Below, piece by piece: positions 29,801 through 55,975 of a stretch of 64,000 nucleotides of DNA. The stretch is from positions 682,001-746,000 of the forward strand of contig NW_020847569.1 of NCBI RefSeq assembly GCF_003704095.1, given 5' to 3'. The notes under the pieces were generated by a model. It saw nothing but the letters and a program-made list of their open reading frames with translations, ran no database searches and was not told where the DNA came from. The position numbers and the translations under genes were made by a program. The DNA is from Pocillopora damicornis. Lineage: Eukaryota. The stretch's first letter is position 1; each line of letters begins with the position of its first letter.

Positions 29801-31554
29801 TTTTTCTCAGGGCTGAATTAACTAAAAATAATTCCTCTTTGGGAATTCCCGAGAATGAACAACAGGTCCTACCAAGGTTTTCTTTGCTCTTCTTCTGTCA
29901 TAAGTCCAGTTTCTTCTCTATCATCAGCAGGGACGAGGCGAAATTTGGCGTAGCGAGGCACACCGTCTCTCGCTTTGTATTCAAACGCCATCCACGAGTA
30001 ATACCTCTGGTCAGTAAATGATTCCGGAGCTCGACGAAATGCAGCAATGGTTAAGTAAAAGCTGTGTTTGTAAAAGCAGATAAGAAACGGAAATTCATGA
30101 ATTGCGGTACTTTTAGCTTGTGGCTAAGACCATTTCTGTTTAATTACTTGGCGGCAGATGCAAGAAAAAAACAGCCTGTTTCGGGCACTCAGTTTTGATT
30201 ACAAACAAAAAAGCGGATGGCTCTCCATTTTTGTTTTTGGATCTTCTTGAAAAAGGTAGTAAGGCTACTCAATAACAGGGAATCCAGTCTTGTGGCCGCA
30301 TATGTTTAATGGAAAGATCTCAGGACAGATCGGAAGTTGGAACTTATCGAAAGACTTCTCCCGAGCGTCTTGTGAATAAATTGAAAATGAAATATCGTAT
30401 CTCATTTCTTTCACTTAAATGTGAGTTGGCTCGAAATCGAATAAAATTTGATAACAGGTCAATTACACTTCCCTTTCTCCAGGCATTTATCTTTTATGTA
30501 AAGTTTTCTTTATTTTGTTACGATATGTGAACAGATAATGTTGCTACTTACTGCCAAGGGTCCTCCAAACAATATGTCTCAAATGCTTCTGTCTCACCAT
30601 GCAACGCACTAAGCATCTTGTCTAAGCTATAGAGGCTCCAATACGCAGCCTCCTCACCAGTATGTAACAACAGATCAAAAGGTGATTCGAAGTCACTATC
30701 GGCAAACTTCAGAGCCGCTAGTCTCACGTCTAATTCGGCATCGTCTACCTTGATAAGATTACAGTGGAGGAGGCGGGCTGGAAACACCCTTTCTGCAGAG
30801 AAAAAGTCGTGCGCAGGGAGGAGAGGGTTGTTGAGGACTGTTACAACTCCAGTGGCTCCTACACCTCTTGTTTGTTGTGTCAAGAGTGTCTTGAGAAGGA
30901 ACCCGGCTTGATACTTTTTAACATAAAGTGCCAACTGCGACGCACTGAATGGCCCAGCTTCTGGTGGAGGCTGTAAAGGGAAGCAAGTACAGAACTAGTC
31001 TCTAACCTTTATCTAAAACAAAATTCGTTCACTATGGAGATTAAATGAAAACTTTAACATTATCCTGGAGAATTGCTAGACACTCCTGATTATATCCCTT
31101 CACAAAAACCATTCCTAATGTTTAAATCGATGACGATTACAAATAATAGCGGTAACTCTATCGTCGATGTTAACGAGTATGATATGGATCAAGGACAATT
31201 ACCAAACAAATATAATGATAGCAATGATGAAAATGTTTCATCTCTGAGGTGAGATCGGACATTAAAGGCATAAAGAACTTGATTACCTCGTCTGCCTCTA
31301 CCATCATTTTTTCAAATAATTCCTGTCCCATCATTTCCTTGATTATCTTGAATCCCATGTTCTTCCCTATTTTCATTGTAAAAAAGCACAAATTAGTCAA
31401 AGAAAACATAAATCATGCATAATTTAAACTCAGACAGGAGATGAACAGTTCTTGTTTACTTACAGCCTTCTGGCTCCTGATTTGTTTCAACTGTTGGTCT
31501 CTTGATGGTTTGATTCACTCTTTTCTTTTTTCTCTTTGATGGAATAATGCCCAT
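23898..31554 (-). CDS. AOS-LOX-type fusion, copy A: catalase-like domain lacking heme His/Tyr + PLAT + LOX
   Basis: Exon 1 (31554-31464) MGIIPSKRKKKR... splices to WKNMGFK..., then PPPEAGPF...[30 protein letters not shown] and YKLQIQLHE (cAOS-like). PLAT motif FTGDRKHAGTNA. LOX motifs [27 protein letters not shown] and PEKIPNSIAI*. The exon phases checked are compatible. Confidence 0.92.
26110..26288 (-). mobile_element. tRNA-derived SINE-like element
   Basis: The minus strand begins gcaatgTGGCCGAGTGGttggggcgctgg...cccGGTTTGATGCCc (Pol III A and B boxes), followed by a non-tRNA body. Confidence 0.55.
28297..28539. mobile_element. MITE-like element with short imperfect terminal inverted repeats
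   Basis: ctgggccgggtttttcaaagctggattaag ... taatcagccttcgaacaactgggccc. Elements with similar termini at ~8480-8600 and ~15887-16027. Confidence 0.5.
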
Positions 31555-32431
31555 GTTTCTAAACAAGTGTTTTTTTTCTGGTAAGTGATAGAATAAAGAG
31601 TCAATGCCGAGCATAAGAGGAGTGTTTATGCATGTGGTGATCCTAGTCGACCAGCCCTATTCTTAGTTACGTTTGACCCCGTAAGCTCTTGCTCCCCATT
31701 TGAGACAGCTTTCGAGACTGAGTATTTTGACCACAAACGCAGTACAATGACCCGGCCAGAGACACCAAGCCCGGAAATTTCGATCCGGAGTCCCACCTTT
31801 CCCGATGTTTTAGGTTAATTGGTAGGCATTCGGTGAAGGTTTTGGTCGCCTTTGCAGCTTTTGATGCTAATATTTCCGGGACGAAACGTCCATTGTTCTC
31901 ACGAAGTGTTTTAAAGAGCGCATCCAACATTGGAAATGTAAACGTGATAACATAGCCTGCGCGGCAGAGAGGGTAAGTCTGTCAGCCGCGCGCTCCTTGC
32001 CCCTTACCCCACCCCTCCCCCCTCATCCCTTATCATCTCCCCGAGCGTGTCACGCAGACGAAGAATAATGCATTTGTGAAGCTAATCGTCTTCATCATTT
32101 ATATTTGTCCAAGATTATCATACCGATGGTTTATTTTGGATATTGAAAGTCACTCGGGATTTTAGAGGTAACTTAACGCATTCAAATATCATTAAAGTGT
32201 ACTTTTATCCCATCTTTTTCTTCTAATCAAGCTGAAGAACGTTTCTTTCATAAGAGACATCGCTTTCCTTACATTCAAAGTAAATTTCAACTCAGTAACT
32301 AGCGATGTAGGAGCGCATATTAATGACTCCTTCTACAAGCCACCCGAAGTCATTAATATGCTTGCATATTCACGAGAGGACTTGTATTTTGAACACTATT
32401 AAGAACTAAAGGTTAGCTGTAATAATAAAAA

Positions 32432-32525
32432 AGGGCTAACGCTCAACACGTCAGCTTTGAAACTCTTTGCGGTGCCCAATTTACGTAATCAACTGTGTTG
32501 ACAATGCTAGTATTACCCTAGTATA

Positions 32526-32556
<31 letters not shown>

Positions 32557-32572
32557 CAGAAACTTACTCCCT
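32432..32572 (+). mobile_element. Degenerate copy of the 63628 repeat family
   Basis: Shares aagggctaacgctc...gtcagcttt...ctctcccaccgacgcagcaccacagtttct; ribozyme core truncated and mutated. Confidence 0.75.
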
Positions 32573-33078
32573 TGATTCATTTGTAATAATCAAGACATGC
32601 TCTAAAATCTTCATCGACGGAAACGTTAAAAAAATAATGAAACGTGACAATTGTCACACAACTCTTTCAAAAATCAATCCGTTTCCATGATATTGGACTC
32701 CCACTGAAACTAAATTTTCATCGTTTCGTATAAATATAGCACTTAGCCCGCTGGCAGATTGAAATAGAACAAAGCTAGTGAAGTAAAAAAACCATTTAAC
32801 GAGCAGATACAGCTTTCGGTCAAACAACGCGAAATAACACAATTATGAAGCATCGGAATGGTGTGCTCATTACCAGTTCGCACAATGATTGTGGAGTTTG
32901 CATTTCATCATTGGTCCTGGTGAAAGGCCGGTCAGAAACATTGCACAAAACATGTCTGTAGCAAATACACTACTTGATACCATATACTCACCTGCTATGA
33001 ACCTGTGAACGATATCTTGCAAATTCCCTCAATATTCATTTCCCATATCGATCACTGCGTCACTTGTTGCTCTTGCCC

Positions 33079-33205
33079 TGACGTCAAGTGACAAAGAACT
33101 CAGCTGTTGCCTAGAAACAAAGACCTAAAGCTGTTTATAATGCCCTAAGGGAACTTAACACCTCTGCATGTTACTTTGAGATCACTGAACCTTTGCTAAT
33201 TGTAC
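33079..33205 (-). promoter_or_regulatory. Putative promoter block of copy A (CRE + RFX X-box), conserved upstream of copy B
   Basis: TGACGTCA at 33079-33086 and GTTGCCTAGAAAC at 33106-33118. The block aligns by eye to ~43540-43685. A candidate 5'UTR splice donor lies at ~32990. Confidence 0.55.
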
Positions 33206-34651
33206 CGTGGAAAGCGTTCGTGTCTAAACATTTTAAAAATATAAAGGGACGTATTTTTAAGGGCTTAACTCATCCATAAATCTCTAATCTCTCTTTATTC
33301 AATAATAATGATGAAATTTAAAAGCTTTTTCTTTCATGTTACGTTTCATGTTTCCCCGACAGCGCTTGGCCAGTGGTTGCGAAAACAAATGTCTGTCTGA
33401 GCTAAGCTAAGTAGCACCAATACAATGTATAATCCGACACCAGTTTCGAGTACTGTATTATAAGGCACTTGGCTTTGTAACCGTAAAAAAATCCACGATC
33501 AAAACAGCAGCTTAAAATTGTGACAACTTACTTCGCGCTTCTTGTCATTGACGTGATCTTACGATTATTTTTGTATTTCTAGCTTAGGCCCACGAATTGA
33601 CGTTTAGACATCGAAGATGTGACGATATCTTCATGTCATAAATTTCAAATGCGCTGTATCACGCAATGAAGGCCGAGAGACGTATGGCTTACGTCACTAT
33701 TTGTACACTGTAAGCGGAGACGGCAAAGTTTTGTCGATGGCGATCATCAAAGTCCACTATACACAAAACGATCACACGATTTATTTCCACATTTCTTTCA
33801 AAATATCAAGGGCTGCAGCCAGGATGGATCATAATAAAATCTAAAACTTTTCCAAGCTGAATATTTATTCAAGAAACACGCTTTGGAGGTCTTTGGTTTT
33901 GCAAAACAAAAGCGAAAAACCTCTCTAACAGCCGTTGAGGTTTACAAGATATTAACCCAAAGCCAATGACAGAATCTTCAATTGCTTCCTTTGTAAACGT
34001 ATATGCCGTTGCACTCACTCATGAGCTATCGAGTTAAACACTCGAGAAGAAATTCCATATCTAGGCACGCTCATATATCATTCTCTATTTCTCGCGGCTG
34101 AAAGGGAAAATCGGCAGCTGGAAAATTTGCCACAGGCCGATTTTGGTCGTTTACCCGAAAGATTTCTTCTGCCGGTAAGGACAAAGTCAATAAATGAGAA
34201 TTTTGTAACTTGAAAATTACGACCATTGATGTTTTGTAATCCCGATTCATTTTTCCATCTTGAGACTTTGCGCCAACGCTTTGTATGATTGTCGATTCTT
34301 TTTTTTTCATTTATTAAATCGGCTTTTCTTGTCACCACAGGGCTATTGTGTTTATATGATACGCAAAATAATGCATGGCTGCTTGTAGGTATAGAATTTC
34401 TCTTCTCGTGTTAAACCCGACATTTCACTAATTCGCTGCGCTCACTCGTGAGCTATCGACTTAACATCGAAGAGAAATCCCATATCTACGCCTGCTCATG
34501 TATTATTTTCTATTTATTGTTACTCTTTTTAGTGTTTTGTTTCTTTTTATTACGCAAAATTATGTTCTTATAAACTAATTCAGTTCTCTAAATTTATCAT
34601 CAGAGCCAAACTAGTAGACGAACTTCCGTCTTAGAATTGATGACTTAACAA

Positions 34652-34862
34652 TTAACCCTTTAACTCCCAGATCAAATTTGTTATTCTCCTTACTGTCAAC
34701 CATACAATTCGTATAATGTTAGTTCAGAGAATTTAGTATTTGATCAACTAATTATCCCTAAATTGATCTTCTTCTTCATTCTCACCACTTATCTGGTTGA
34801 TGTTGTATAGACATTGCAAGGAAAAATTCTGTCTTGGTCACTCATGGGAGTTAACGGGTTAA
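34652..34862. mobile_element. ~210-bp MITE with TTAA-CCCTT termini (piggyBac-like, non-autonomous)
   Basis: ttaaccctttaactccc ... gggagttaacgggttaa terminal inverted repeats. Related copies at ~2520-2648, 5340-5545, 6953-7130, 7175-7386, 10310-10665, 20448-20700 and 61717-61928. Confidence 0.75.
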
Positions 34863-35365
34863 CCCTTACTGCCTCTGGCCACTGGGAGAGAAACTCAGCT
34901 ACACAGGCAGCATCGAAGTGCACCAGTCATAATTGTTGAGAACCAACTATACACGATTTGCAGTCGAAACGTCGAAGCGCGATCCTCATCATTGGAAAAA
35001 CGATATAGAAAACTCATTACTTCATCGAGTCTCTTATTCTAAATTTATTTGTCTACATTTCTCGGATTAAATCATCAAGTTGATGCGACTTGGATCATCG
35101 TCGGATGTTTATTGGTTAATCATTTATCCTTGAAAGAGAACATCAACCTTATATACTGAGAGAGTACAAGTACATGGTCCAAATGGCACATACGAAAAAC
35201 TTGACTCGGGATTCATATCATCGGAGAAATAGCATTCTGGAGTCGTTCATTCGATGCGCAGTTCAATGATATCCAGGGTACTTCTGAGAAGTATTTCCTG
35301 TCTATTTCACACTGGAACCCATATCTGGGTGTTAATGATATGTGAGTATCTTGGCGGAACCATGC

Positions 35366-38300
35366 CTAAATAGCTATACTGTTTGGTATTCTTTCCGGAA
35401 GTAAATGAATGTAAGGAAACTTCAAAGTATCATTCCTTTTCTTTATGGACCTTGAAATACGATTAAGTTTTCCTTGGAAGAGCAAAATGGCCTCTCTGGC
35501 AGCCATGTCAGTAAAGGAGCCATCAGAGTAATCACCAAGGAAACGCTTCATAGGAAAAAGAGAGAGATAAATGCACTTGTTAATACGATAACCTATACGC
35601 AAAAATATAACTCAGTAAGATAAATACGTGAAGTGTGTATCTATTATCTGAACTCTGGCTTGAGGGGAAAACTGAAAACTATAGGGATGGCTATTTCGAC
35701 AAAATCTAACTTAGGCCGCAGTTTTAAAAAATCGATGGACCTCGAGATTTACTTTTGAGTGGGCTGTCTGAAGTGAATAAATATTTCCAGTCCATCTATA
35801 AAACTGTTCCCATCATAAGTTCAGATTAAAAAATATGGCCTAAAACACAGGTTTACTAAACAACAACTCAAGTCAATTTAAATGACCGCATATAATTCAG
35901 CTTTAACTGTAACAGTGATTGGCATGACAACTTGAAAAAAGAAATTTATATTTTTTATTGTGTGATAACTACACAACAGGAAAAGTAATAGAAAAGTATA
36001 GTTTTGGGACAAAAGTTAAGATATTTCTTACCTCATCAGGAAATATGCGTGTTAGATCGTAGACGGTCGCTATAGCAACTCCTACATGGTGCTGGTTGGG
36101 CAGGCTTTTCATAACGTCTTCCATGGTCAGTTTGCCCTTCTCTGTTGGAGGAGGCTGTCGCATGAGAGTAGGTGCATTGGGAGAGAAGCCATACACGTCC
36201 ATCATAGAAAAGTTGACGGCTGCGTGTTGACAAGAGTAGGTAAATATGACAATAGTAAGTAGGTTGGCCAGCTGCTCAGAGCTTGCAACGCACGATGGGA
36301 AGCCATGGTCCGCCTCACCCTCCCGGACAGTGTAGCCATTGTTGTGAATGTCTTCGATCCACGCTTGGAGTTCTGTGTCCTGTTGGGAAAAAAGGCAGCA
36401 TGGAGTGAGAGTGTATTTTAGAAAAGGTTTCCAGCTCTTTCTTACTTTCTGAGATAAAACACTTCTCACCCTTTTGATATCCTCATCTGATTTGTAATAA
36501 ATCGATAGCATCCTTTTGATGAAGTCATTTATGGCCTGCCATAGTCGCAAAGCATCGTCGCGATAGTGGAATCCCGGAAGTTTGTCTGGATCGTCCACTC
36601 CTCTCTCCTTTAGGACATTTGGTAAGTCATACGATGACCAATTTATGTCCTTGTAGTGCTTTTTCATGAGATCAATGTGACCTAAAATGGGAAAAATGAG
36701 CAGATTATTATAAAACACGATAAACAAATACTGGCAATATTCACGTTGTAACCCAGGAATGTTGGAGCAATAATGGATTTGAAATGCATGCTTACCATTT
36801 CATATGTTGGAGAATATTGTAAAAAAAAGACCATGAATAGAAATGTAATCTCAACTGACAACCAGAAAAGCTGATTTGATATATAAGGTTAAAAAATTGC
36901 TCATACAATGAATGTTCAGCCTTTCGTATAGGTGATGTGGTAGCACTTGAAATTATGATTTTAATTTCATTCATATGATATGCGTGAAATTTGAAAGATG
37001 ATATGAAAGGTGTAAAATAGGGGGGAACAAATTATGCAGGAGACCCAGACAGAAAAGGGACACCAAAATGATGGCCGGGTGACATTCACAGAAGCATTTT
37101 ACCTCCGCCTCCCACACTAAGTGTGTGATCAGCCACGCCCCCCGCAGGAAGCAGTAATTCCCTTGCAACGGTGTTGATGGCCAAAACTCCCTTTATGTGA
37201 GGTATCAGTAGTTTCCATAAAGGGTGGACGGAGGGAAGCTGTCTCCAGGTTGCAACAGCGATCGGTTCCATGAACAGATGAGTTCGAAGAAGGTGAGTGA
37301 TCATCTGCAAAAGAAAAATGTTTACAAATTTTAGGAAGGTTACTAAGTTTTTTGTTGCAAAATTTTGTGTAGTCGCCTAAAACGTATGTTTAAACAAGCA
37401 CTTATAAGTAAGGTAAATCTTGTACAGTGAACTGAGTTGAGATTCATATCTTCAAGTACATGTGACTCAATTTTCTTGTTTTACTTTGCAGTGTTACTTT
37501 CCATAGTGTTATTATCTTTTTCAGTAAAACTTTTGAATATGCAAATGATACATAAGAAACTACTTTTGAAGTGAGAATAAAGAAAAAAAATACATATTTG
37601 CGACTCCGAACTGTTATGGCTCTGGAAAATGACAACCTGCGCGGCGATATGCCTCGTTAAATTGTGAACCTGTGAAGTTTTCTCTGTTATGTCACTATTA
37701 TTTGCTCAGGCTCTATTGCTGTGTTTATTTTTTCTTCTTTGTTCTTCGTCACTCGCGAACGTGACAGGATCATACACGTAGGGTGGGTAGAAATGTTTTG
37801 TAATCTTTCACCTGGTTGCAAATGTCGTTTTAGATCCGGAAATACTCACCTGATGCCACTGAACGTCTGCAGTGCGCAACCACATCTTAGCGAAGGTCCA
37901 GTCCAACTCAGAATCATTTGGGGTCCATATTGGGTTGGTCTCATTCGTTTCTTGGTGGAACTGAATTGCTATGGGTGCTATGTCTCCAGTGCCCTTGACA
38001 TAGAACAACCCAAACGGCGCAGATATGTAGCGCTTCTCTAAGTTCTCGTCATTCCAGCCGTAAAGCTTGATGTCCTCAAGGATCTTGAAATCAACCATGT
38101 AAAGACGACCTTCCTGAAATGTATGATAAAATTGAAAAAGAAATACTCACGCACAAAACGTCAGTCTTGAATTGGGAACACAAACTGAAGTTTGTTTTAA
38201 CGAGAGTCACTCGGCTTTTTGGGTCAATAACCCGTCGGTATATTCTTCCGAACGTCCGTCTATTCGTGCTTACATCTTCCGTTCGTCCCTCCTTTCCTCG

Positions 38301-41300
38301 CTGCCGTTCGTCAATCCGTTCAAATCAATTGAAAAAAAACACTTACTTTCATTGCTTTCTCTAATGTATCACCCTCATCAAGAAGGTTGCCAATCAGCTC
38401 TTGTGTGACGGGGAAGCTAGGGGGGAGTTCAGTACATCGTTTGATTGTATCAGGGTTGCAGCCATTCAGGAACTGCGCTCCGTAGAAGTTGTCTTCCTGC
38501 CAATGGTCGGCGGCTTGTGGAACATCACCAACAAAAGCGACAAACGCCTAGATAAAAGTCGACCTCCCGCTAATCAATCGAATTTCACATGTAACACGTT
38601 TAAAATTCTAGTCTAAAACACGAAGAGAATTTTATTATTGGTTTTCGTATAAGATCTCGCATTACTTTTTATTAATATTATGCCAGATTAAAGAGTAATT
38701 ACTGAAATATACGGACTTAAAGATTAACAGAACCTCCCGCGGGTGTCTCTTTACAGTTAGATAAAAAGGAAATGCTTAGAAATCTCTTTGACGATGAATC
38801 CGACTTTGAATTGTATCATGCCTAAACCTACCTTACGGTAATCATCAAAGTCTTCCCAAGAATCGAAGATATTCCATAATTTTATCAAGCCAAGGTTTAT
38901 TAGAGCTTTCTGTCTGGCTGTGTGAAGGTCGTCGGCGGCTTCAGTGGTAAACTGGACATCTTTAGGTAGTTTTTTCCAATTTTCAGACTTGACATATCCA
39001 GGTAAACAGTGAAATACAGGATCGTCTCCCCACTGGAACAGTTCTTGTCTCTGTTGAATTTCAATTCGTCTTTGGTTTTGCACTGCTTCATGCTGCTTCT
39101 CTGTGACAAGTAACGCTGAAGTAGATTAAACAACACCAACCATAAGGAATTGTGATATATATTTGTTGTATTCTAGAGTAATAGGTATTTTATTTAATCG
39201 CAAGAGTTGCAGCGCACGAAGAGCGCTTAACTAGGTATCGAGTTATGCCATAAACGATGATTGTGCCCCGTCAAAGTCAGAGTGGTAAGTGTGATTGTGA
39301 TATGATATTTGTAATTCCCTTTTCGTTTATCCGTCTATAATACGATTAGGGATCCTCATCATGTTATACCACGTGTCTACGCAAAGATCTGTTTGATCGA
39401 GTAAAACAACTAAGTTGCAAACAACTTAACAACTAAGTTGCAATTTGCAGAAAATACCTTCCGCGAATACCTCATGCAAAGAAAAAATCGACAATACACT
39501 CCAAATTTCTACTTTTCTTTAGGGCCGTTAAGGTTTGTAATAACCTCCAAGGGATGAAGCCTTGAAAGATAAATGTAGAGAAACACCCAAGAAAAAAATT
39601 ATATTGAGACAGTTTTTGGCTAGAGATGATAAGAAGGGTTGAAAATATAGAAATTCTTGAAAACTTGAGTTTTCATTCTTGACAAGCATGGCCCTCGGCG
39701 AAGCTCCTTTGAAGTTGCAGTTGTCCCAAATTTACCGAAAAATCTCAGCGATATCGTTGTCAAAGTTATCCTTTCATACAACCCTGAACAACATGGTTGC
39801 TTCCATCAACACTTACCTTTTCCTTCGAAGAAGACGGATTCACTCTGTACCCACTGAAAGCAAGGGAATTCATAAAGCCTCTGGGGATCTTGGCTACAGG
39901 TAATCATGATTTTCTCCACAAACCAGTCACTTAACAATCCACTTTGATCATTGTGTAGTTTAATCATTAAAAGCTCCCCAACATCTTCTGCAGCAAGGAG
40001 ATAAGTATCTTCTTTTCCAGCTTCAAGATCGTCATGGAGCAATTTGTCCATCAAAAGAGGTCTTGTTCTTCCTTTGGTTCCTTGGAAAACGTTTTTTTAA
40101 AAAAAGCTATTATTGCAGTAATCATAGACATTTTACCATTCTAAATATCAAACGTTAGTTCATCTTTGCCTTCAGAGAGGGTGAACTCTGAATTGTAAAG
40201 TATTTTTCCATTGCATAACCGTGACAATAGATTTAATGTGAAGAAAGTGCAATGTTTGAATTCAGTCTTACCTGTGATGGTGAGGGTTACATCGGCGTTG
40301 GTACCAGCATATTTTCGATCGCCAGTGAAAACTGAGATGCAGTAAATGGACATATCTTCCCCGGTTTTCGAAGGTCGCCGCAGATTCAATTTATTGCTTG
40401 AGCCAGATTGTACTTTTAATTTCAAGTACGCCGAGGAATTGTAGTCGTAGATAGTCTTGGCTGGTGGCACTGACAAAGATGAGGGCATATTTTCTAACGA
40501 AGAGCGTGTTGATTCAGTTACGTCTAATGGTATAAGTGAAGTCAACTTGACGTTAGCTAAGTCCAACCAAGGGTGAGTGACTTGGTCCCAGACTCTAGAC
40601 GCGTGGAGAACAAGATGTGAGTCCTCGGGTTGTATTTCATGTAGTTGTATTTGAAGTTTGTATTGAATACCACCGTCTGACATGCGCTCTTCAAATTCAG
40701 AAGTTAGATAATCTTTAGGTCTCCTATCGCCCTCCCAACGGAATGTTTCCCTACAGAAAAGAGAGGAGAAGTAAGCTAAGAAATGATTGATTCTCTTGTT
40801 TAAAGTTAGCCGAGCTCTGATTCATTCGTTCCAGTACAAGCTTCTAAGACTGATTGATAATGACCATACATCACACTTTTTAGTATGATTACAAAGAATG
40901 GACAACAGGTCCTACCAAGGTTTTCTTTGCTCTTCTTCTGTAATAAGTCCAGTTTCTTCTCTATCATCAGAAGGGACGAGGCGAAATTTGGCGTAGCGAG
41001 GCACACCGTCTTTCGCTTTGTATTCAAACGCCATCCACGAGTAATACCGCTGATCAGTAAATGAGTTAGGAGCTCGACGAAATGCAGCAATGGTCAAATA
41101 GAAGCTGTATTTGTAAAAACAGAAAAAATTAACTTTCTAAATTCCATTTGACCAACTCTTTGTCTTTTTGTGTTACTGGCTTAGCAGCCGGCGTCGTAAG
41201 CATTCTGAAAACAATTTTGGGTTATTATACTTTTGGGTCATCAGTGTTTTCACATATTTTACATTGATTGTACTTACTGCCAAGGATCCTCCGCACAATA

Positions 41301-42619
41301 GGTCTCAAATGCTTTTATGTCTCCATTCAACGCACTAAGCATCTTGTCTAAGCTATAAAGGCTCCAATATGCAGCCTCTTCGCCAGTATACAAAAACAGA
41401 TCGAAAGGTGATTCAAAGTCACTGTCGGCAAACTTGAGAGTCGTTAATCTGATGTCCAATTCGGCATCGTCCATCTTAACGAGATTACAGTGACGGAGAC
41501 GGACTGGAAACACCCTTTCTGCAGAAAAAAATTCGTGGGCAGGGAGGAGTGGGTTGTTTAGGACTGTTACAACCCCAGATGCACCTACACCTCTCGTCTG
41601 TTGTGTAACAAGTGACCTGAGAACAAAGCCGGCTTGAAACTTTTTTACATAAAGTGCTAATTGTGACGCACTGAACGGTCCAGCTTCTGGTGGAGGCTGT
41701 AAAGGGAAGCAAAAACACGACATCAGTCATGCTTACAAATCACGGTTATATTTGGAGAGGCCTTAAACACGAACAACATAAGAAGGTCGGTAAATCTAAC
41801 ATCCTGTAGTTGATTATAGAAAAACATGCTATTTTTCTTGCAAAGAACGTGCGGCACTGTTGATCCTAGCTGTATGCAGCTGCAGGGCATGTATCACATT
41901 TAAACTTAGTAATGGTTTAACTCATCAAAGAGTTCTGTGTAGTTAAACGGTCACGCATCGCAACGCGGAAACCGCAGGTGCGGGGTTCTATTCCTTAAGA
42001 GAAGTCAGATTTGTTCCTTATCCCACTCCCGTCATGACCGTGACAAGACGGATAACCTTTTGCTGTAGTCTTCAATACTGGTGTTTAGTGTTTTGGATAA
42101 TGTATGGGGAAAAGATTTCGATGAAACAACAAAAAATACAATAGCGAGAACAAAAACGACAAAAAATTAAACAGAGGGTAACCCTAGACGAAAATCGTTT
42201 CTAATTTTGATAACGATGATGGCGATTATGAATTATGAGGGTGACGTTAGCGATTGCGTTACCGAGACAAAAGCAATATTGGTTATGAAATTTTGATGAA
42301 AATTCTATGAAAAAGTTCTTCACCTCGTCTGCCTCTGCCATCTTTTTTTCAAACAATTCCACTCCCATTGATTCCTTAAATATCTTGAATCCCATATTCT
42401 TCCCTGTTGAAATACACATACAACTCCCAAAATTAGTTCAAATCGTTTACACTGGAAATAATAACATTTAGAGACAGCAAGAGAGGATAAATATGCTCTC
42501 TTTGAGACAGTTTTTTTTCTCTACTTACATGGTTCTCGTTCTTCGCTTACTTCAATCGTCGGCCTCTTAATAGTTCCAATTACTTTGTTCTTCTTCCTCT
42601 TTGAAGGAATAATCCCCAT
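35366..42619 (-). CDS. AOS-LOX-type fusion, copy B: catalase-like domain lacking heme His/Tyr + PLAT + LOX with Ala at the Coffa site
   Basis: ATG 42619, MGIIPSKRKKNK...; same exon structure as copy A. LOX motifs [27 protein letters not shown] and PERIPNSIAI*. Confidence 0.92.
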
Positions 42620-43539
42620 CTTTACCCGGATATTCTGCTTTTATGTTATAAGTAAAAAAGATAACATTAGCTAATTTGTCATGATCTGGCTCAGTCCATG
42701 TTCCGTGGAATGAAGGGCAAAATAAAAGACGACAAACACGTTGCATGTTTACTGGTGCATTGACTTTTTCGTCCAGCGGAACATCACCGATAAAATTGTT
42801 CAAAACAGGAATCTATTGTCGTGACGCGAGAAAGGAGAAAAAGCATTTGCAAGGCTAATTCGCCATGAAGCGTCAGGAAATAGCGCATAATTGATACTGA
42901 AACAACTTAAACAATATTTAAACGTTTCTTCATACAATAATAATAATAATACCATCAGTTTTTTTCATTTGCATTCGCAATTTGAGCTCTTTGAACGTAA
43001 TTTATGATTAAATTTGCTTACTATGGCTAAAGCGACGCAGTAGTTCGCCCTCACGACTCGTATTCGACTATAAAACTGATTCCGTTGTAATTTTCAAAAC
43101 ACATTGTAAGTTACAAGGACTTTAAAACTCATTTCGTCAGGTGGAGTCGGCTAAGCCTTGGGTCTCTCTTTTGAGTCATCTCATCTCGTTTCGTTTAACG
43201 GCCTGGTGATACATTGCTTCGCTGATGAAATGAAACAATTTATTTATCGGACGACGGGAGCTGTCCGTGAGTTAAGACGAAATGTGCAGAGTACAGTGTC
43301 AAAATGAAGAGGGTACGAATTGCTCATAAGCAAGGTTAAAATCATTTGAGCTCGTGACGATAGACTAGTTTGTCTTGAAACATTCTACAGGACCCTTCGG
43401 CGACACATGCAAGTCGCAGCGCTTAACACGTACCTTTGAAACGTTTTCACCGTGTAGATCTTGTTGCTAAATTGTGTTTCTTTTTTTTTGTTTATTCCGT
43501 CATGTCTTTGAATCTTTACACCCTCGTCTTTGGTTGTTT

Positions 43540-43685
43540 CCGTCACGTCATTTAAGATAAATACTGAAAATACGTGTTTCCTAGCGATAGAGACCCTCAG
43601 TAAACAAACCTGTTTAGTATGCCCTCGAGGAGCTTAATCAACTCTGCGTCTTTCTTTAGATCATTGAACCTTGACTAATTGCTCT
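43540..43685 (-). promoter_or_regulatory. Putative promoter block of copy B, paralogous to 33079-33205
   Basis: cgtcacgtca, GTTTCCTAGCGAT (43576-43588), and the shared ctgttta..atgccct..ggagcttaa...agatca.tgaacctt..ctaattg. Confidence 0.5.
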
Positions 43686-46139: not shown

Positions 46140-46520
46140 ACTCTTTTTTTTCGTGTCATTCACCAGGCGTCGGAATACGAAGTCCGTAAAAGAAGAAGCG
46201 CTACGCCTCTTGAGAACTAATTCGTCACGATCCATGTTTAATATAAACGCACAAAGTTTCAAAATACGCTCAAAGAATAGAGGATATCTAGATGAAGGTT
46301 TTGAGAAAAGTATCTTGAGTTATTTTTTGCGAGATAGAAAGTACACTTAACAAAAACAAATTACATAGAAAATATTACCTTTTGTAACACAATCTCATCT
46401 GGCTTATCCTAATAAGCGCTTAAATTGAAGGAAGCAGATTTAAAAGCGCTAGCGAATGGCAGGAGTTGCTCTGGCCAGTCAAACACCTTTCTTAAACGCT
46501 TGACTGGCTTACCGGGCGTG
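46140..46520 (+). mobile_element. Decayed Penelope-like retroelement fragment (C-terminal to RT)
   Basis: VKEEALRLLRTNSS...FKIRSKNRGY, followed by ILPFVTQ; frameshifts and stops present. Confidence 0.7.
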
Positions 46521-47468
46521 TCTACTTGAGCAATGTTGAGTTACTCATTCGGTTAAGTGACTCCTTTCATTGCTGATTCAATTGTCTTTCTTTGATTAAG
46601 ATAGTAGATTTAGCATACAATACTGGCGATTATTTGATTTACTTTTATTAAAGAAAGTAAAATTACAATACGATTAAGTAGATATAGGAAATGTCCCTAC
46701 AATAGTGACGTTATGTAACGCAATACACTACACACACACCAACAAGCCTTTTTGCGGCCTTAGCCGGTCTCGAACATCAGCACTTAAAATGAATAAAACA
46801 CGAGTACCGTTGGAGAGCGTTTGGTCAGAGCTGTTAAAGAAGGATCAAAGCAAATTAAAAATCAGTGAATGTGTTTGTCCTTGAGAACGATTGAATACGC
46901 GACAAATACGTACAGAGAACACCTATAAACATTCAGAATAAATCAAATATAATTTACCCGTGGTGAAAGGAAAAAGGAACACCCCAACTTATTTGATTTC
47001 TGCCACTTTCACCACCATGTTGAAAATAACGCTACCACAATGCAACGCAATCGGAGTGCATTCAGTGTATCCCAGAGGGAAAATATCTCATCACTATAAC
47101 TAGTTTGATTTGGATCTGTCATACACGAGTTCCTCGATTATGATCATTAAAATAATTGCCTAAACGATAACAGCATTTTACAAATATTGGTGGAATGGTA
47201 AAATTAACCAAAAAGGAAGCAGATGATGTCGCTAGTATCACTAGAAAATTGCCAAATATTCTTCTGGTTAGCTCTTCCGTTATTTAACATTTACATTTTC
47301 TACAATAAAAGAAGCAGTATAAACTTTGTTTCCTATCTGGTTATGGACATAAATATAGATTAACCCCTCAGTAACAACGAAGTTTTGGTATGGTAGCTTT
47401 CTTCTATGATGTAGTTAGTCATTTATTCGACAAGTATTCTGGCCATTCTGTTCTCTTTTGTGGTATCT

Positions 47469-50400
47469 CTAAATGGCTATACTGTTTGGTGTTCTCTCTG
47501 GCAGCAGATATTCGTAAGGGACCTCTAACCGTTTATTTCTTTCCTTTATTGCGCTGGAAATCTCATTGAGCTTTCCTTGAAAGCGTAGAATTGCTTCCAA
47601 TGCAGCGTTGTCGGTGAATAGGCCGTCCGTATAGTCACCAAGGAAACGCTTGGGGAGAAAAAAAACGGATGATTTTTTAGTAAGGGAAGGTAGGAAGAGT
47701 TATCCATAAGTCAGCACGTCAGCTTTGTCCGATAAAGAGGTCGATGAGACTTTTAGTCTCCCTCCGACCAGGAAGATAAATGGGTTCCAAGGGTCGTTAA
47801 CTGTGAGTTAAACCCTTTAAAATGCTGGGGGTGACCTTTGATTGACATGCCTCATCTTATCCTAGTCTCGTGGCAACTCCTAATTGTTTCTTGAAGCTAC
47901 CGTAACCTGAACAATCTTTGGTAACAGTGAGTCTCGTGTTCAAACTTGAATTCAACCAATATCTAGCACCATTCACAATAATGGATACTTAAATATGTCG
48001 CATTTTGATCAATTTGGCTATCTTCCCCACATCCCCTGGTCATATTTTTTGTATCAGGCTGACCTGAATTAAAATTACCTCGTCTGGAAAGATGCGTGTC
48101 AAATCATACACTGTTGCTATGGTTACTCCCGCCTGATGCTTTGTTGGTAAACATTTCATGACATCTTTTATGGTTACAACTCCCTTCCTTGTGGGAGGCG
48201 GCTGTCGCATCAGAGCGGGAGCGTTTGGCGGGAAACCAAAAGTATCCATTTGAGAAAAATTCACAGCCGCGTGTTGGCACGAGCAGGTGAAGATTATGAT
48301 AGTCAGCAGATGTGTCAGCTCTGGGATGCTTTTAACCGATACAGGGAAGCCATGACATTTCTCCCCGTTACGCACAGGATAACCATTGTTGTGGAGATCC
48401 AGAATCCACGCTTGGAGCTCTGTGTCCTGTGAAGAGTTGTTAAACCATTATTTCAAAAGACCTGGTTGAAACAGTTGGAATCGTTGCTTTTGCATTAATA
48501 TCAAGATCTGTAAGATATATTCGCTGAGAATTAATGGCTGACGATGCACCAATAAGCTATATCCCAACGAGCAACGACTCTCAGATACACGAGTCGTCTA
48601 GAACTTCTTAGTGTTTAGAGTGGATATGTTTGCATGCGGTTTTAAGAAAATTGCTTAAAGATATATGAAGGATGAGTACGTCCAGGGTTTTAACCTAATG
48701 ACGTACAAGAAGAACACTGGAATATAAAGAGCATTCCCGAGAACTTTTTTTTTAACCTCAGAGGGACACTGGGATGTAACACAAACACAATACTTGCCAT
48801 TTCAATGTCATGATCAGAATGGTAGTAAACTGATAGAATGTCTTTGATGAAATCGCCGATGGCCTGCCACAGACGTAAGGCGTCGTCTCGATAGTGGAAG
48901 CCAGGAAGCTTATTTGCATCAAAAACCCCTCTCTCTTTTAACACTTTGGGAAGGTCATACGATAACCAGCTTAAGCTTTTGTAATACTTCTTCATAAGAG
49001 CTATGTGACCTGGGGATAAGAAGACACCATGCACTGTAAAATAAATAATCTTTAAATTTCCTCAGCTAAAGAGTAGCCTCATCCACGTCTATAAAGCAAA
49101 ACTGGCGATCATACACTGCACTCATTTAGTCTTTGGCCACTATCCTTTTGTATGGCATTAAGGCAAAAGACTGGACGCAACCTGGTTGAGTGGTATGAAC
49201 CCTGAATAGAAAAGCCAGAATTCCACTGGTCTTCCTCTCTCCAATTTAAGGGTTAACACCCATAATATTTTCATTTAAATATGTTTCATTGATTTGCTCT
49301 TCTGCGCCAGTCCCAGTACTAAGAACACCATTGAGGGAAAATAGATCCTAAATTTTTGTAACCATGTACACTTCAACCACTTTTTACGTATAAATATCAT
49401 ACTTGTGAACTGCGGTTTTAGAAATGAAAATGTAAGCGATCTTCGCAGTGATGAACATTACTTAAGCAGTAATAAAACTAACGCCTGAAAAAAATTCAGA
49501 AGATCTGAAAAAAAAATTCTCAAAAATAATTTTAATATATTCACAGTCATTGATTCATCACTTCGCGGGTGTACTACGAACCAACATAAAAAGCAGCTCC
49601 TAGTTGGTAGTGCACCGCACCGGTATCGCAGAGGTCATGGGTTCACATCTCGTACAAGCCTGAATTTTTTCAGGCATTATTTTCACTACTGCTTCAGTAA
49701 TGTTTACGAAGGTCGTTTTCATATTTAATGTGCACTTCATTGGCCTTACCTCCACCACCCAGGCTAAGCGTGTTGTCCGCCACACCTCCGGCAGGAATAA
49801 GTCTCTCTCTTCCAAGCGTGTTGATGGCCAGAACTCCTCTCACGTGAGGGGACAATAATTTCCACAAGGGGTGGAGTGCTGGCAATTGCCTCCTGCTGGC
49901 AAGAGCGACAGGCTCCATGAAAAGATGAGTACGAAGTAGATGGGTTATCATCTGTTAATGCAAAGGAAATTTCGATCAAATTCTATAAGAAATATCGAGA
50001 GAAATATTGATACATTGATTCAAAAGGGTAGTATTGTCTTGCTAGGATTCGAAATACAGGACTGACATTTTAAGACTTACTTGATGCCATTGTGAGTCAG
50101 CATTGCGAAGCCACATTTTGGCGTAGGTCCAGTCTAGCTCAGAATCATTTGGGGTCCATATTGGGTTTGTCTCACTTGGCTCTTGATGGAACTGAATTGC
50201 TATTGGCACTACATCCCCACTACCTCGAACATAGAACAAACCTAAAGATGCAGACGTGTAGCGCCTTTCTAGTTTTGAATCGTTTTGGCCATAATGTGGA
50301 ATGTCGTCAAGAATCTCGTAATCTACCATGTACACACGGCCATCCTGAAAATGATACAGTGATAAAAGCCTTTATTTAATGTTCCATACAAACAACTCTT

Positions 50401-53400
50401 ATTGCCGACATCTTCCTCGGAAAGTAATTGTTCCTCTCTAGAAAAGGGATAGTTTTCTGGTGAATTGCAAGCTAGAGTGAGAAATGCTCTCAAAAAATCC
50501 ATTGGAGTATATAATTCAATTTGTTTATTTTGCTTCCGGATCCTCTTAGAAAGGTTTTTTTTTCCGACACCACAAAATTAAATTTTAGTTGGGGAAGCCT
50601 TTGGTCATTCAACAATTTGCAATTGAGTGCATGTCAAAAGTGATCCGTGATTGCTTTGGTTTTACTTAACCCTGCTCTGTGATTGGTCCAGAAGACTTGC
50701 GCCATCCTTTCAACCTATAAGATGTAAAACTAAAAACTTGATAACTCACGTTTTTCCGCACTTCAAGCAATTTGCTTCTTTTCACTCTTAGGTCCCATTG
50801 GCTAATGATGATGAAACCTTTGTTATGATTGGTTGAGGGAATTACTTTTCGATTAAGTGACAGGTATAGGGACACTCAATTGAAAACTGCTGTACTTCTC
50901 TACGTTACAGATGTTTACTGTCTTGTTCCCCCTAAAAGTTCCTGAGTTCTTGACATTTATCTAGATATTTGGTACTAACGATCGAATTTGATACTCAATG
51001 AAGAGTAGAGATCCGTACCTTTATTGCGTTTTGCAGTGTATCACCCGCATCTAGGAGATTGCCAACCAACTCTTGTGTCACGGGAAAGTTGGAGGGAAGT
51101 TTTGAGCATCGCATGATCGTGTCAGGATTGCAGCCGTTAAGGAACTGTGCTCCGTAGAAACGGTCATCTTGCCAGCGCTTGGAGGCCAGAGGAACCTCTC
51201 CAACAAAAGAGACGAACGCCTACAAAGTAGTGTTTGTTAGCATCTGAAAATGAGAATGTTCAAGATCTGAAATTGGGCATCAATTCTGTAGTGTTAATCT
51301 GTTACCTTCTTGAAATCATGAAAATCTTCCCACGACTCAAGCATGTTCAGCAATTTAACCAGCCCTAGGTTGATTAACGCTTTTCGCTTTGCCTGGTAGA
51401 GGTCATCGATTGCTTCTTCTGTAAATCGTACGTCTTTTGGAAGTGTCCTCACGCTCTCGGATTTGATAAACCCTGGAAATCCGTCAAAATTGGGATCATC
51501 TCCCCACTGGTATATTTCTAGCCGCTTTTGAACCTCTAGGCGTCGTTGCTTTTTCAGTACCTCGTGTTGTTCATCTGTTATCAACTTTGCTAAAAGGGAC
51601 AAAATTGCACATCATGAAAGTTAGTTTTAAATTGTCTCATGAGAAAAGAAAGGGATGAGTCAAGATGAATTTCACCTTTAGAAATTCGTGCATAACTCTA
51701 AATCTTTGGCTTCTTCGTGTGGACTATCCAGCTATTTTGAAATTACAAAAAGGACAAAAGTTCACCGGTATTTAGGGAAGCTCAACTAAGTTGTAGCACA
51801 CGTTGTCAATGCAAAGTGACGCAAATGCAATTGCAACTCTGTAATTGCCGATACAAAAGTTACTTTATACAACAACTCTCCAGTAACAAAGACCCAACCG
51901 ACCATGTAAAGTCTGGTCATTTAGCTTTTCTTTCGCATGAAGAATTTTAATTCTGACCATACGCTTTGGGCTCCGCTCAGTCGTGTGACACTTATGCAGA
52001 AGAAAGTAGTCTTCTACCTACCTTTCCCTTCAAAGAAAACTGCCTCTTGCTGCACCCATCCGTAGCATGGAAATTCGTAAACTGTTTGACTGTTTGAGCT
52101 GCAATTGATCTCAACCTTGTCAACGAACCAATCACTGGAGCGATGGAATCCGACACCCTGGTTATTCTCGAGTTTTATAATTAAAGGCTCGCCAACATCC
52201 TCTGCATTAATGATGTAAGTGTCTTCCTGTCCTTTCTGAAAGTTATTGCGATACCATTTTTCTAGGGTAACTGGCTTTGTTCTTCCCTTAGTCCCTAGAA
52301 ACAGATTTGGTCTTTAGCCCAAGTACCTTAATGTGACCTTCTTTTCTAAGAATCCTTAAGGTATAAAGCAGCTAAAATAAATAGCCCGTTGTAAACTGAC
52401 TCGTTATTGGTATAGGGACATTATCCTGACAATAAAATTAAAGAATGAAATCATAGGACTACTTTGTTATTTGACACTACTGGTATCAGTAACAGTCAAC
52501 TCGTTACGGTGATACGCTACGTGTAAAATCCTTTTAGTGTTGCAGACATTACACGTAGAGAGCTTCCGAAAATAAGAATGAAGAGAAGAAGAATTTTGAG
52601 GAAGACCCATGCTTTAGACAACTTTGCAATCGATTAAGGCCGCTATACCATCAATCATGGTTTTCACTGGCGACCCGCACACAAATGCTAAAGTATTTAT
52701 TTCCCAGAATAATAACACTGAGGAGACTCAGTAAGGTTAAGTGCAAAGACAAATGATTTGAATTGCCTTGTATGGTTTTTGCTGGTTGTCATGTTATTGT
52801 TATTGATCATGCCGATATATTCCACGGTTAAGAAAAGAATGAGAGATAATGTTGTGCATGATTGCGCTTGTATTTGCGGGGCAAATGAAAACGTATTGCT
52901 GCCATCTTGTACATCGTACTTTTGGAAGGCTTACCTGTAATCGTCAAAGCAACTTTTGCATCAGTTCCTGCTCCCTTACGATTTCCTGTTTTCACCTTGA
53001 CGCAATAACTCACTTCGGATAGCATCTGCTCTCTCGATACCTTTTTACGAGGCCTGTTTGAACTCATCATATTCGATGTGGGATAAATTTTCGACCTCAA
53101 GTAAGCAATGGAGTTGTAGTCGTAAATTGTGTCAGCAGGAGGAATGCCCAGCGATAGGGGGCGATGTTCCAATGAATAACGAGTGCGCTCTACTATCTCT
53201 ATTGGCAACACTGACGTAAGAGTGACATCAGCAAGATCCAACCAGGGATGTGTTTTTTGATCCCAAGCCCTGGCTGCGTGCAAAATTAGATGTGAGTCAT
53301 CCGGTTTTATTTCGTGCAGTTGTATTTGAAGCTTGTATTTTACTTCCCCTTCAGCAATCTGATTCATGAATTCTGGGATTAAGTAACTCTCGGGTCTCTT

Positions 53401-55975
53401 TTCGTCTTCCCATCTGGCAGGCACCCTAGAACGAAGGAAGTTTCGTCTGTTTAGAACGTCCCATTTGGTTTTGATTGAGTACTTTCTCGTGAACAATTCA
53501 TCTTGATTTTTCATCAAATTAGCAATAAAACAGACCAGCAGACAAAAACACACCAAATGATCAACAGAACAAGAGTACAAGAGACCGATACACCACCAAA
53601 TCAACGAACATAGTCCCAAGTGTTCCCTTAATTTCTTCCATGCTTTGTCTGAGAGGCTGCACCTCGAAGCATGCATATCATTAATAATACTCAATGTTAT
53701 ATGAAAAAAGGTAGTATAAACTTGTCATCGGCAAATCGGGCTGGGGAGAGTTGTTGCTGGACCTACAGTATTGACCATCTCGGCTGTTATCACTGCTATC
53801 TGATCATGAAACTCTCAAGCGATGATCATATCCTTGGACGATCATGGAAGGAAATTGTTAATACAAAAAAATTACCATGGTTTCCGTTGGTCGTATTCTG
53901 TCATCAAACCAGTCTCCTCTCTGTCATCTGCGGGAACGAGGCGAAATTTTGCGTAACGTGGTACACCATCTTTTGCTTTGTATTCAAACGCCATCCACGA
54001 GTAATACCGCTGATCAGTAAACGACTTAGGAGCTCGTCGGAAAACTGCTATGGCTAAGTGGAAGCTGAGATAAAGAGGCAAAGTTATTAGCCAGTTAAAA
54101 ACGTCTAAAGAGTCATTATAGGCATCTTGTAAGACATTTTTTTCTTTATATAATTTTACAGAGCGTAGTCTCTTTTACTGCACCTTTGAATGAGCATAAT
54201 TCCGTTTTCACTCTCCCATGAAATCGAGAACTGGTCGATTTAACCCGATTTATATCGTATGAAAGTCAATATTTTCCAATATAAACATGTTATAAAATAT
54301 AAATAAAAGTAAGATACACAAAAGCCTCTGAGCATTCTATGTCTGATATGTAATGTAATTTAAAAAAATTTTGACGGACTTACTTCCATGGATCCTCCAA
54401 GCAGAAAGCTTTGAATACTTTTGGACCCCCAGCCAATGCTGTCAACATTCTATCAAAACTAACTATGTTCCAAAAAGCAGCCTCTTCACCCGTATGCATC
54501 ATCAAATCGAACGGCGAGTCGAAATCATTGTCCGCAAACTTCAGAGACACCGCCCTTACGTCTAATTGAGTATCATCCGTTCGCACGAGGTTGGAATGGC
54601 GGAGGCGGACTGGGAATACGTGCCCCACTTTGAAGAATTCGTGCTCGGGAAGAAGAGGGTTTTCTACCACTGTTACGGTTCCTATAGCCCCAACACCTTT
54701 AGCGTGGGTCCCACGTTGACGAGTAATCAGAGTTTTTAAGGCGAAACGGGTTTTGTACTTTTTGACGTATCGAGCCATTTGTGATGCACTGAGGGGTCCA
54801 GGCTCAGGTGGAGGCTAATAAAAACACATAAAATTAAGTCGTTATTAAAGTTGGGATATATTACCGTATAACGACAAAGAAAGAACCCTTCGTCTACTTT
54901 GTTGGAGCAGTCTGCAAATCAATTTATGCAAGAGATCATAATCTCTTAATTAAGGCTGATAACTGACTTCAGCCGCTGTTTCAAGACGTCACTAGCTGCA
55001 AGAGAAAATCTCTTCAATATCTTTTTCAACAAATAGTGTTTAGTTTATTTGCCCCTGTTTGCTATCATTTGTCAATGTTCTGTCTCCTTTAGTTTGTCCA
55101 CACCTTATGCCAACACCTGTTTTATTTTAAGCCGACACCGCCAAAATCCTTTTTCTAAAATACACTTTTACATAAGAGAAATCCAAATGAAGTCTAACTT
55201 TTTATTTTGGGTTAGCAGCCTTGGCTCTAAATAGAAGCCCCTGGTCGGAAAGTACTATATAAGCCGACCAATCAGCGACGGAGTAGAGCTATTTCATTTA
55301 AAGTCACGGATTACAAAGAGACAGCCTGCACCCCGTGGCTATTTGAAGATTTTTTCATCAAGGTGTCCCGAAATTTCAGTTTGCATTGTTTTCTATGGAT
55401 AATACACTGCTGGGTTCGCCTGTGGGAATTAACATTTTCCCTGATCTTGAATGCATCAGAAATAGACATACCTCGTCGGCCTCTTTCATTTTCTTGAAAT
55501 ATAACTCATCTCCCATTCTTTCTCGGTAAAGTTTAAATCCCATGTTTTCCCCTATGGATTCAAAACACAAGATTGTTATGAACTCAACATTCCACATCCT
55601 GTGCTCCCACTTGAAGCCGGAATATATTATCATTTTCGTCGACTCACCAACATTCTTCTAAGATCATAAATTTAACCGCTTTTCAGGATCGCGCCGAGTC
55701 TCTCTCCATTCTTACAGTGGCTGGAAAGAGAGAGATCCTGACGACCAGTACGGACAAGCCTGAGGCAAATAGGCCCTCTGTTGTAGAAGCCTAGATACCT
55801 CTAACCCGTCCAAAAACTCGGAGAAACTATCAGCTCTACGACTTTTAAAACTTATATTCAGGCTAAGTGACTCTAAGTTATACTCACATTCGGTAAGTTC
55901 TTCTCTGCTTCCAACAATTGATTTTTTCGTGAAGCCGTGTATCACCTTGAGTTTCTTTGAATTTACTCCTCCCAT
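47469..55975 (-). CDS. AOS/HPL-LOX fusion, copy C: catalase-like heme domain with His and Tyr intact + PLAT + LOX
   Basis: Exon 1 (55975-55888) [10 protein letters not shown]...ELTE splices (phase 1) to WENMGFK. Distal motif RGTH (His 54704-54706), RLRHSN, and proximal LRSKIY (Tyr 53083-53085). LOX motifs [27 protein letters not shown] and [10 protein letters not shown] (stop 47469-47471). Confidence 0.93.
49420..49735. mobile_element. Second copy of the tRNA-arm foldback repeat, in an intron of copy C close to a splice donor
   Basis: gcgatcttcgcagt...cgcctgaaaaaaattcag and ctgaattttttcaggc arms; tagttggtagtgcaccgcaccggtatcgcagaggtcatgggttc. Confidence 0.65.

Follow-up and report, generated by a model that had tools for sequence, protein, structure and literature searches.

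Three tandem AOS-LOX genes and their start-codon exons

The window analyzed here, the whole 64,000-nt stretch of Pocillopora damicornis DNA on contig NW_020847569.1 (positions 682,001-746,000; G000:C4204:682001-746000 in a genome of 234 Mb and 4393 contigs), contains three tandem genes for fusions of allene oxide synthase and lipoxygenase (AOS-LOX) on its minus strand: A (~23.9-31.6 kb), B (~35.4-42.6 kb) and C (~47.5-56.0 kb). The open reading frames (ORFs) of all three encode pieces of a catalase-related AOS, a PLAT domain and a lipoxygenase (LOX), in that order, and PF01477 and PF00305 are recorded for the stony-coral clade to which A, B and C belong. The fusion architecture is also seen in the P. 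damicornis protein XP_027058642.1 (P0237), which starts exactly as gene C does, and whose residues 29-1080 align to residues 2-1066 of 3dy5_A (E = 0). Here we consider the short exon that carries the start codon in each gene, and which encodes an extension that probably acts as a myristoyl-plus-polybasic membrane anchor. Homologues were retrieved with one exon ORF of gene B as query, leading to the database proteins of its cluster; the protein clusters in which ORFs of the window fall bear the names P. damicornis and P. verrucosa. A word search with residues 1-60 of P0237 returned seven candidates, none of which scored, and is not evidence of absence.

The coding part of the start-codon exon measures 88-91 nt in A, B and C, and encodes 29-30 residues (Table 1). 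The motif NMGF has three matches on the minus strand, marking the second coding exons of the three genes. These start at 31366, 42403 and 55551, are preceded by ..AG, and open with the letters GG followed by (K/E)NMGF, such that T and GG are united across the phase-1 intron and thereby complete a Trp codon in each gene. All three second coding exons are 80 nt long and end in ..EADE with a GT donor. A first-pass annotation of this DNA had located the start-codon exons at 31554-31464, from 42619, and at 55975-55888, and the letters, phase and translations given there are correct. It had further described each as an exon of about 30 residues in phase 1 that is spliced onto W(K/E)NMGF, an arrangement seen in RNA contigs for A and in matching database models for B and C.

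The Met-Gly (MG) ATG has A at -3 and G at +4, and in each gene an in-frame stop lies upstream with no ATG between, in the genomic sequence for B and C and in the spliced 5' untranslated region (UTR) forms for A. Acceptor-like sites are located 15 nt (B) and 20 nt (C) before the respective ATGs.

Transcript structure of gene A

RNA from four runs of four studies, all in the form of assembled contigs, was aligned to window positions 26300-32200, which cover gene A. Contigs of X1, X8 and X9 (three of the four runs, from three studies) lack precisely the 97 nt that separate 31366 from 31464, where the plus strand has CT..AC ends; this is the splice that the first-pass annotation had proposed to verify by RNA junctions. 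Six more joints in the gene A contigs, all CT..AC, set the downstream exons. One X8 contig of 332 nt runs from the UTR exon through the MG and WKNMGF exons and covers 17 nt at the start of the PPPEAG exon.

The match between contigs and genome ends at 31577, beyond which the contigs run on with the letters of an upstream exon. The loose end of X9 (88 letters) maps to 32992-33019 and that of X8 (121 letters) to 32874-32901, in both cases with AC in front on the plus strand. Gene A accordingly has a non-coding exon ~1.3-1.5 kb upstream that can use either of two GT donors. This makes the MG exon second in the gene A transcript, and its earlier description as a first exon was wrong for this gene, where a non-coding exon is spliced upstream and the acceptor lies 23 nt before the ATG. 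In its extended form, the upstream exon contributes an in-frame TGA ahead of the MG ATG, and each of the four modelled UTR forms of A has a stop before the MG ATG with no in-frame ATG between. Another in-frame ATG, 60 nt upstream (~31614), was considered as the start of A and rejected since it lies in the intron. In the A-run behind the MG-exon acceptor (window 31570-31579), the X8 and X9 contigs have two A more than the reference, apparently because the homopolymer in the 5'UTR differs in length, which leaves the coding frame unchanged.

A predicted myristoylation signal with a basic cluster

Each of the three genes opens with ATG GGN. A paper that treats SH4 motifs (PMC2133112) names GXXXS/T as the minimal N-myristoylation consensus, in which Gly2 is critical and Ser is the preferred residue 6, reports that Lys7 and Lys9 are required for efficient myristoylation of Fyn, and describes SH4 motifs as combining myristate with either palmitate or a polybasic stretch, both signals being jointly needed for stable membrane binding. 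Genes A and B encode GIIPSK and gene C encodes GGVNSK, in which residue 3 is uncharged, position 6 holds the Ser of the Ser/Thr site, and position 7 is Lys and not Pro. Residues 7-20 contain eight Lys/Arg in A, seven in B and five in C, and no Asp/Glu. The claim that MGxxxSK corresponds to the consensus of N-myristoyltransferase (NMT), with Ser6 and Lys7, thus holds for A, B and C by the rule in that source, together with an adjacent basic cluster and no Cys. The genome also encodes the transferase: NMT_C (PF02799) gives two exon matches on contig G000:C217, at 74 and 69 bits against a cut-off of 27.9.

Myristate together with a basic cluster also anchors MARCKS and BASP1. We consider it likely that A, B, C and their clade relatives carry a predicted N-terminal membrane anchor of this kind. 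The initiator Met would be removed, whereupon NMT would acylate Gly2 during translation, and the C14 chain and the adjoining basic cluster would form a two-signal anchor as in Src, MARCKS and BASP1. Such an anchor would tie the enzyme to acidic membranes at their cytosolic face, beside its polyunsaturated fatty-acid substrates, with the remaining 15-20 residues acting as a flexible tether; the retained PLAT domain may still add to membrane binding.

Two other kinds of N-terminal signal were considered and rejected: (i) mitochondrial, secretory or peroxisomal targeting, since the extension has no hydrophobic stretch and an acidic tail, and (ii) dual acylation, since no extension contains Cys.

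Conservation of the extension

To the clade we assigned those proteins, among 118 of at least 600 aa, that match P0237 or P0209 with at least 60% identity over 400 aa or more, which gave 51 members. Forty of these start with MGxxxSK ahead of the conserved Trp, i.e. 40 of the 40 full-length members, and no differing type of extension occurs among the 51. The 40 proteins contain 23 distinct extensions, all of which fit the PROSITE myristoylation pattern PS00008, G-{EDRKHPFYW}-x(2)-[STAGCN]-{P}, and have 4-8 Lys/Arg and 0-2 Asp/Glu in residues 7-20, and no Cys. An MGxxxSK start was not found in the octocoral, Oculina-type or other homologues compared.

The same N-termini recur in P. verrucosa RefSeq models (P0209 for A; P0231, P0151 and P0152 for B; P0239 for C), and Stylophora has all three types (P0236, A; P0233, B; P0234, C). 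Orthologues start with MGTTSSKRRKR in Acropora, MGITGSKQKARK in Montipora and MGIITSKKRKNN in Porites. Logan/JGI contigs hold ORFs of 1080-1107 aa that begin likewise, and since these contigs are only 3.4-4.8 kb long, their length fits spliced transcripts.

One alternative is that the extension is translated and has no targeting role, as a disordered leader that fits a loose motif by chance. PROSITE-type myristoylation patterns are short and produce many chance matches, and residues in the middle of the extension are free to vary. In a comparison of 13 lineages or paralogues, however, M1, G2, S6 and K7 are invariant, and are the only such positions in columns 1-14 (distinct residues per column: 1 1 4 4 5 1 1 3 4 6 6 8 6 8), while positions 3-5 and 8-14 each take 3-8 different residues. 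The basic excess is likewise maintained across two paralogue lineages and no fewer than five genera, and only 3 of 42 more distant homologues, forming one unrelated pair of clusters, show a PS00008-type fit. Judged from these alignments, the MGxxxSK pattern is more than chance, and we regard a functionless leader as very unlikely.

Among the more distant AOS-LOX-like fusions, P0079 (ENA, 1180 aa), P0117 and P0206 (Logan, 1166 aa) group with the MMETSP transcript P0009. They start with MGNGASV.. or MGGGSSI.., which fits the myristoylation pattern without a basic run, and may carry a further N-terminal Gly signal that arose independently within the family.

In the Porites proteins P0213, P0271, P0278 and P0281, the extension is 66 aa long, with MGIITSKKRKNN followed by three Q/T/V-rich repeats (..QTVQNEQVIQTP..) and then the Trp. 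The C-type extension has a second conserved block, (K/R)KSIVGSRE(E/Q)L (window 55888-55930, minus strand), which is near-identical in Pocillopora, Stylophora, Acropora, Montipora and P0210, and may serve as a binding motif or as a site for a basophilic kinase.

Points against the anchor and competing explanations

Several points weigh against a membrane anchor in these enzymes. Acylation and membrane binding of coral AOS-LOX are predictions from sequence, and position 5 is Pro in both A and B. The RNA evidence comes from contigs and not from raw reads and covers gene A, where run X5 has no contig on the MG exon; the start-codon exons of B and C are supported by annotation models and orthologues. 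Of the 51 clade members, 11 begin at internal positions downstream of the extension, and may be truncated models, truncated contigs or real anchor-less isoforms. Transcript starts are not visible in contigs, and the basic stretches KRKKKR, KRKKNK and KKLK of A, B and C also fit the classical nuclear-localisation pattern. The 11 members with internal starts include the P. lutea isoform X2 (P0272) and the Logan ORF P0275, both of which begin with MKLFVKKYE and may be truncations or an anchor-less isoform.

Alternatively, the main products could begin at a downstream Met, such as that of NMGF, with the MG exon confined to a minor or untranslated form; models beginning with MGFKIF, MENLGF, MGEELF or MKLFVKKYE (P0269, P0285, P0283, P0270, P0272, P0275) speak for this, and contigs do not show where transcripts start. 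Against it, contigs of three RNA runs join the UTR, MG and WKNMGF exons in A, no in-frame ATG separates the MG ATG from the stop before it, the letters at -3 and +4 are those given above, and transcript-sized contigs of several corals contain the complete ORF beginning with MG. That G2, S6 and K7 are under purifying selection further implies translation of the MG exon. A predominant downstream start therefore appears highly improbable, while a minor isoform of this kind may exist, for example X2 of Porites.

The basic cluster could instead be a nuclear-localisation signal (NLS), or the binding site of some other partner, with Gly2 merely N-acetylated and the enzyme directed to the nucleus or nuclear envelope. 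The NLS pattern K-(K/R)-x-(K/R) is matched by A (KRKK), B (KRKK), C (KKLK) and Acropora (KRRK), and mammalian 5-lipoxygenase acts at the nuclear envelope. The pattern is, however, unconserved: it is not matched by SKQKARKV of Montipora, SKKKFEVK of P0210, SKKKPEKD of P0211 or SKKNLKVK of P0212, whereas all 23 distinct extensions keep G2, S6 and K7, and an NLS need not lie at residue 7 behind Met-Gly. We consider nuclear targeting unlikely, though it may apply to some members.

Taken as a prediction, the lipid-anchor interpretation put forward in the first-pass annotation is well supported: the exons, the fit to NMT, the conservation and the NMT gene in the genome all speak for it, and two details had to be corrected, namely the "first exon" of gene A and the "gain" of the exon, to which we now turn.

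Origin of the extension

A quick maximum-likelihood tree with midpoint root was built from 32 chosen rows of the 118 proteins, from which near-duplicates, truncated models and B/C chimeras were excluded. In this tree all 16 MG rows fall into a single clade, which has an SH-like approximate likelihood-ratio test (SH-aLRT) value of 100 and within which one subclade is of A/B type and includes Porites and a second Acropora paralogue, and the other is of C type and includes Acropora and Montipora. The sister group consists of Oculina and Actinostola (MEWKNIGY; the Actinostola model is truncated), followed by the octocorals Capnella and Gersemia (MTWKNFGF, MVWKNYGF). Each subclade contains Pocilloporidae and, besides, Acroporidae or Poritidae, which makes both the motif and the duplication older than the split of those families; we take this split to be the robust/complex divide.

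The genome contains three further AOS-like loci besides A, B and C. In one of these, L004 (G000:C2496), the start-codon exon reads ..TAG/GGTCC..AGC ATG GCT T/GTAAGT (slashes mark exon borders) and the next exon GG CGT AAT CTC GGA TAC, encoding M-A-W-R-N-L-G-Y. The phase-1 intron within the Trp codon and the acceptor before the start-codon exon are thus common to anchored and anchor-less paralogues. As L004 has the intron without the extension, the intron is older, and the extension arose as an exon that was already there lengthened its coding part from 2 codons to 29-30. To speak of the gain of an exon was accordingly inaccurate, given that both the start-codon exon and its phase-1 intron are present in an anchor-less paralogue of the same genome.

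L005 (G000:C2496:243179-246592), the tandem neighbour of L004, lacks the ATG at the homologous exon (locus position ~2300-2330, minus strand), reading ..CAACACACCT/GTAAGT where L004 reads ..CAGCATGGCTT/GTAAGT. The missing ATG suggests that L005 starts elsewhere or is decaying.

Changes in the PLAT loops

A, B and C all still encode the PLAT domain (window ORFs 27666-27977 and 39806-40054, and the matching exon of C). At the positions of octocoral Trp413 and Trp449, which we take to be the membrane-insertion residues of the PLAT loops, C has Trp and His (GFHRSS), A has Trp and a three-residue deletion (GGLY), and B has Leu and the same deletion. The second loop Trp (449) is absent from all anchored clade members examined and is kept in Oculina. 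As read from the alignment, these loop changes would agree with a changed mode of contact between enzyme and membrane.

Feature coordinates and annotation of the locus

Table 1. Exons, introns and upstream elements of genes A, B and C (window positions; slashes mark exon borders)
Feature	Position	Strand	Details
Gene A start-codon exon, coding part	31464..31554	-	MGIIPSKRKKKRVNQTIKRPTVETNQEPEG + T (first base of Trp codon); donor GTAAGT; ATG GGC; N-terminus identical to P0209 (P. verrucosa XP_058954727.1); inside contigs of X1, X8, X9
Gene A phase-1 intron, 97 nt	31367..31463	-	Within Trp codon; GT..AG; joint in X1, X8, X9
Gene A exon, 80 nt	31287..31366	-	(W)KNMGFKIIKEMMGQELFEKMMVEADE; joints at 31365/6 and 30970-31287
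Gene A 5'UTR part of MG exon, 23 nt	31555..31577	-	Directly behind acceptor ..CCAG/
Gene A upstream exon extension	32874..32991	-	Alternative donor AACTG/GTAATG at 32874
Gene A non-coding upstream exon, short form	32992..33077	-	Donor GCAG/GTGAGT at 32992; 33077 is contig reach only
Gene A promoter-proximal block	33127..33202	-	TATA-like GGCATTATAAAC; 79% identical over 77 nt to 43606-43681 (upstream of B)
Gene B start-codon exon, coding part	42529..42619	-	MGIIPSKRKKNKVIGTIKRPTIEVSEEREP + T; donor GTAAGT; N-terminus identical to P0231, P0151, P0152 (P. verrucosa RefSeq); in-frame stop 24 nt upstream
Gene B phase-1 intron, 125 nt, modelled	42404..42528	-	GT..AG
Gene B exon, 80 nt	42324..42403	-	(W)KNMGFKIFKESMGVELFEKKMAEADE
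Gene C start-codon exon, coding part, + T	55888..55975	-	Donor GTGAGT; N-terminus identical to P0237; in-frame stop 63 nt upstream, no ATG between
Gene C phase-1 intron, 336 nt, modelled	55552..55887	-	GT..AG
Gene C exon, 80 nt	55472..55551	-	(W) at start

The promoter-proximal block shared by A and B contains GGGCATTATAAAC in A and GGGCATACTAAAC in B; a search upstream of C at E <= 1e-3 gave no comparable block.

The GenBank model RMX56645.1 (P0232, P. damicornis, 3235 aa; window 23900-55975) fuses C, B and A into a single protein. The MGIIPSK exons of B and A become internal in this model, at residues ~1110 and ~2164, and translated UTR precedes the internal MGII starts (..NIRVK-MGII.. and ..LKN-MGII..). 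A consequence of this annotation is that two of the three N-terminal glycines are hidden within the polypeptide. B and A are merged likewise in CAH3041300.1 of P. meandrina (P0235, 2126 aa). In P. verrucosa, P0151 (XP_066020411.1) and P0152 (XP_066020441.1) resemble B over residues ~1-510, with 96-100% identity to P0231, and C over the rest of their length, with 93-100% identity to P0239; they represent either a real recombinant B/C copy or a chimeric model.

Discussion

Coral arachidonate metabolism centres on AOS-LOX, an enzyme that is induced by wounding (PMC3925239). If the predicted anchor is real, the main stony-coral AOS-LOX enzymes are made as membrane-resident proteins, which would change both the cellular site where the unstable allene oxide products arise and the way in which the pathway is switched on. 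Expression and assay would be affected as well: recombinant protein from E. coli without NMT would carry no anchor.

A full-text literature search, whose coverage of subscription journals is slight, found no paper that links lipoxygenase or AOS-LOX to myristoylation. The available main text of a survey of stony-coral AOS-LOX (PMC5793058), which gives lengths of 1037-1081 aa in stony corals against 1066-1067 aa in soft corals, mentions neither myristoylation nor the N-terminus, and the available portion of a 2024 review of LOX-membrane interaction (PMC10889196) mentions no myristoylation, lipid anchor or acylation. The exons themselves are already in RefSeq; what is new is their link to lipid anchoring, and a predicted myristoylation signal appears, by this search, to be undescribed for the AOS-LOX family.

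To our knowledge, the known contacts between lipoxygenases and membranes are all non-covalent. A broader proposal, which we put forward only tentatively and think more doubtful than the anchor itself, is that reef-building corals possess a clade of covalently lipid-anchored LOX fusions, the first such, in which the anchor predates the split of the sampled stony-coral families, has been kept in two paralogue lineages and partly replaces the PLAT Trp loop and Ca2+. Phosphorylation of Ser/Thr at the basic cluster could then release the enzyme, providing a switchable, membrane-resident source of allene oxide in wound and stress responses.

The closest known system is the octocoral AOS-LOX (Plexaura homomalla 3DY5, Capnella, Gersemia), which resembles A, B and C in its AOS-PLAT-LOX order and in the W-K/E-N-x-G-F start of its AOS domain, identity to the Capnella and Gersemia enzymes being 44-45%. 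Residue 2 of 3dy5_A (TWKNFGF) aligns to residue 29 of P0237, and Capnella P0222 starts with MTWKNFGF, in agreement with the earlier statement that W(K/E)NMGF corresponds to the very start of octocoral cAOS. As the alignment leaves out the residues of P0237 before position 29, no solved structure includes an equivalent of the extension. Whereas the octocoral enzymes start with M-T/V-W, two residues before the Trp, A, B and C add 27-28 residues with MGxxxSK and the basic cluster, and octocoral Trp449 in the PLAT loop is replaced by His or deleted.

The extension itself is closest to the Src-type SH4 anchor, with which it shares Met-Gly, Ser6, Lys7, a Lys/Arg run behind and the lack of Cys (PMC2133112, in its accessible text). 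Src-type anchors are found on kinase and scaffold proteins, in contrast to the ~1070-aa oxylipin-forming enzyme considered here, whose anchor is a prediction from sequence. A precedent for an enzyme with and without such an anchor is NADH-cytochrome b5 reductase, one gene of which yields a myristoylated membrane form and a soluble form that differ only at an N-terminus with the myristoylation consensus (accessible part of PMC2289487). The two reductase forms arise from alternative promoters of one gene, whereas the anchored and anchor-less coral forms are separate paralogues, and anchor-less isoforms of anchored coral genes are merely hinted at, in Porites. Lipoxygenases recruited through Ca2+ and PLAT (coral 8R-LOX, coral 11R-LOX and human 5-LOX) likewise bring LOX to the bilayer, and the PLAT domain is kept in A, B and C; that recruitment is reversible and non-covalent, whereas the anchor predicted for A, B and C would be a covalent lipid.

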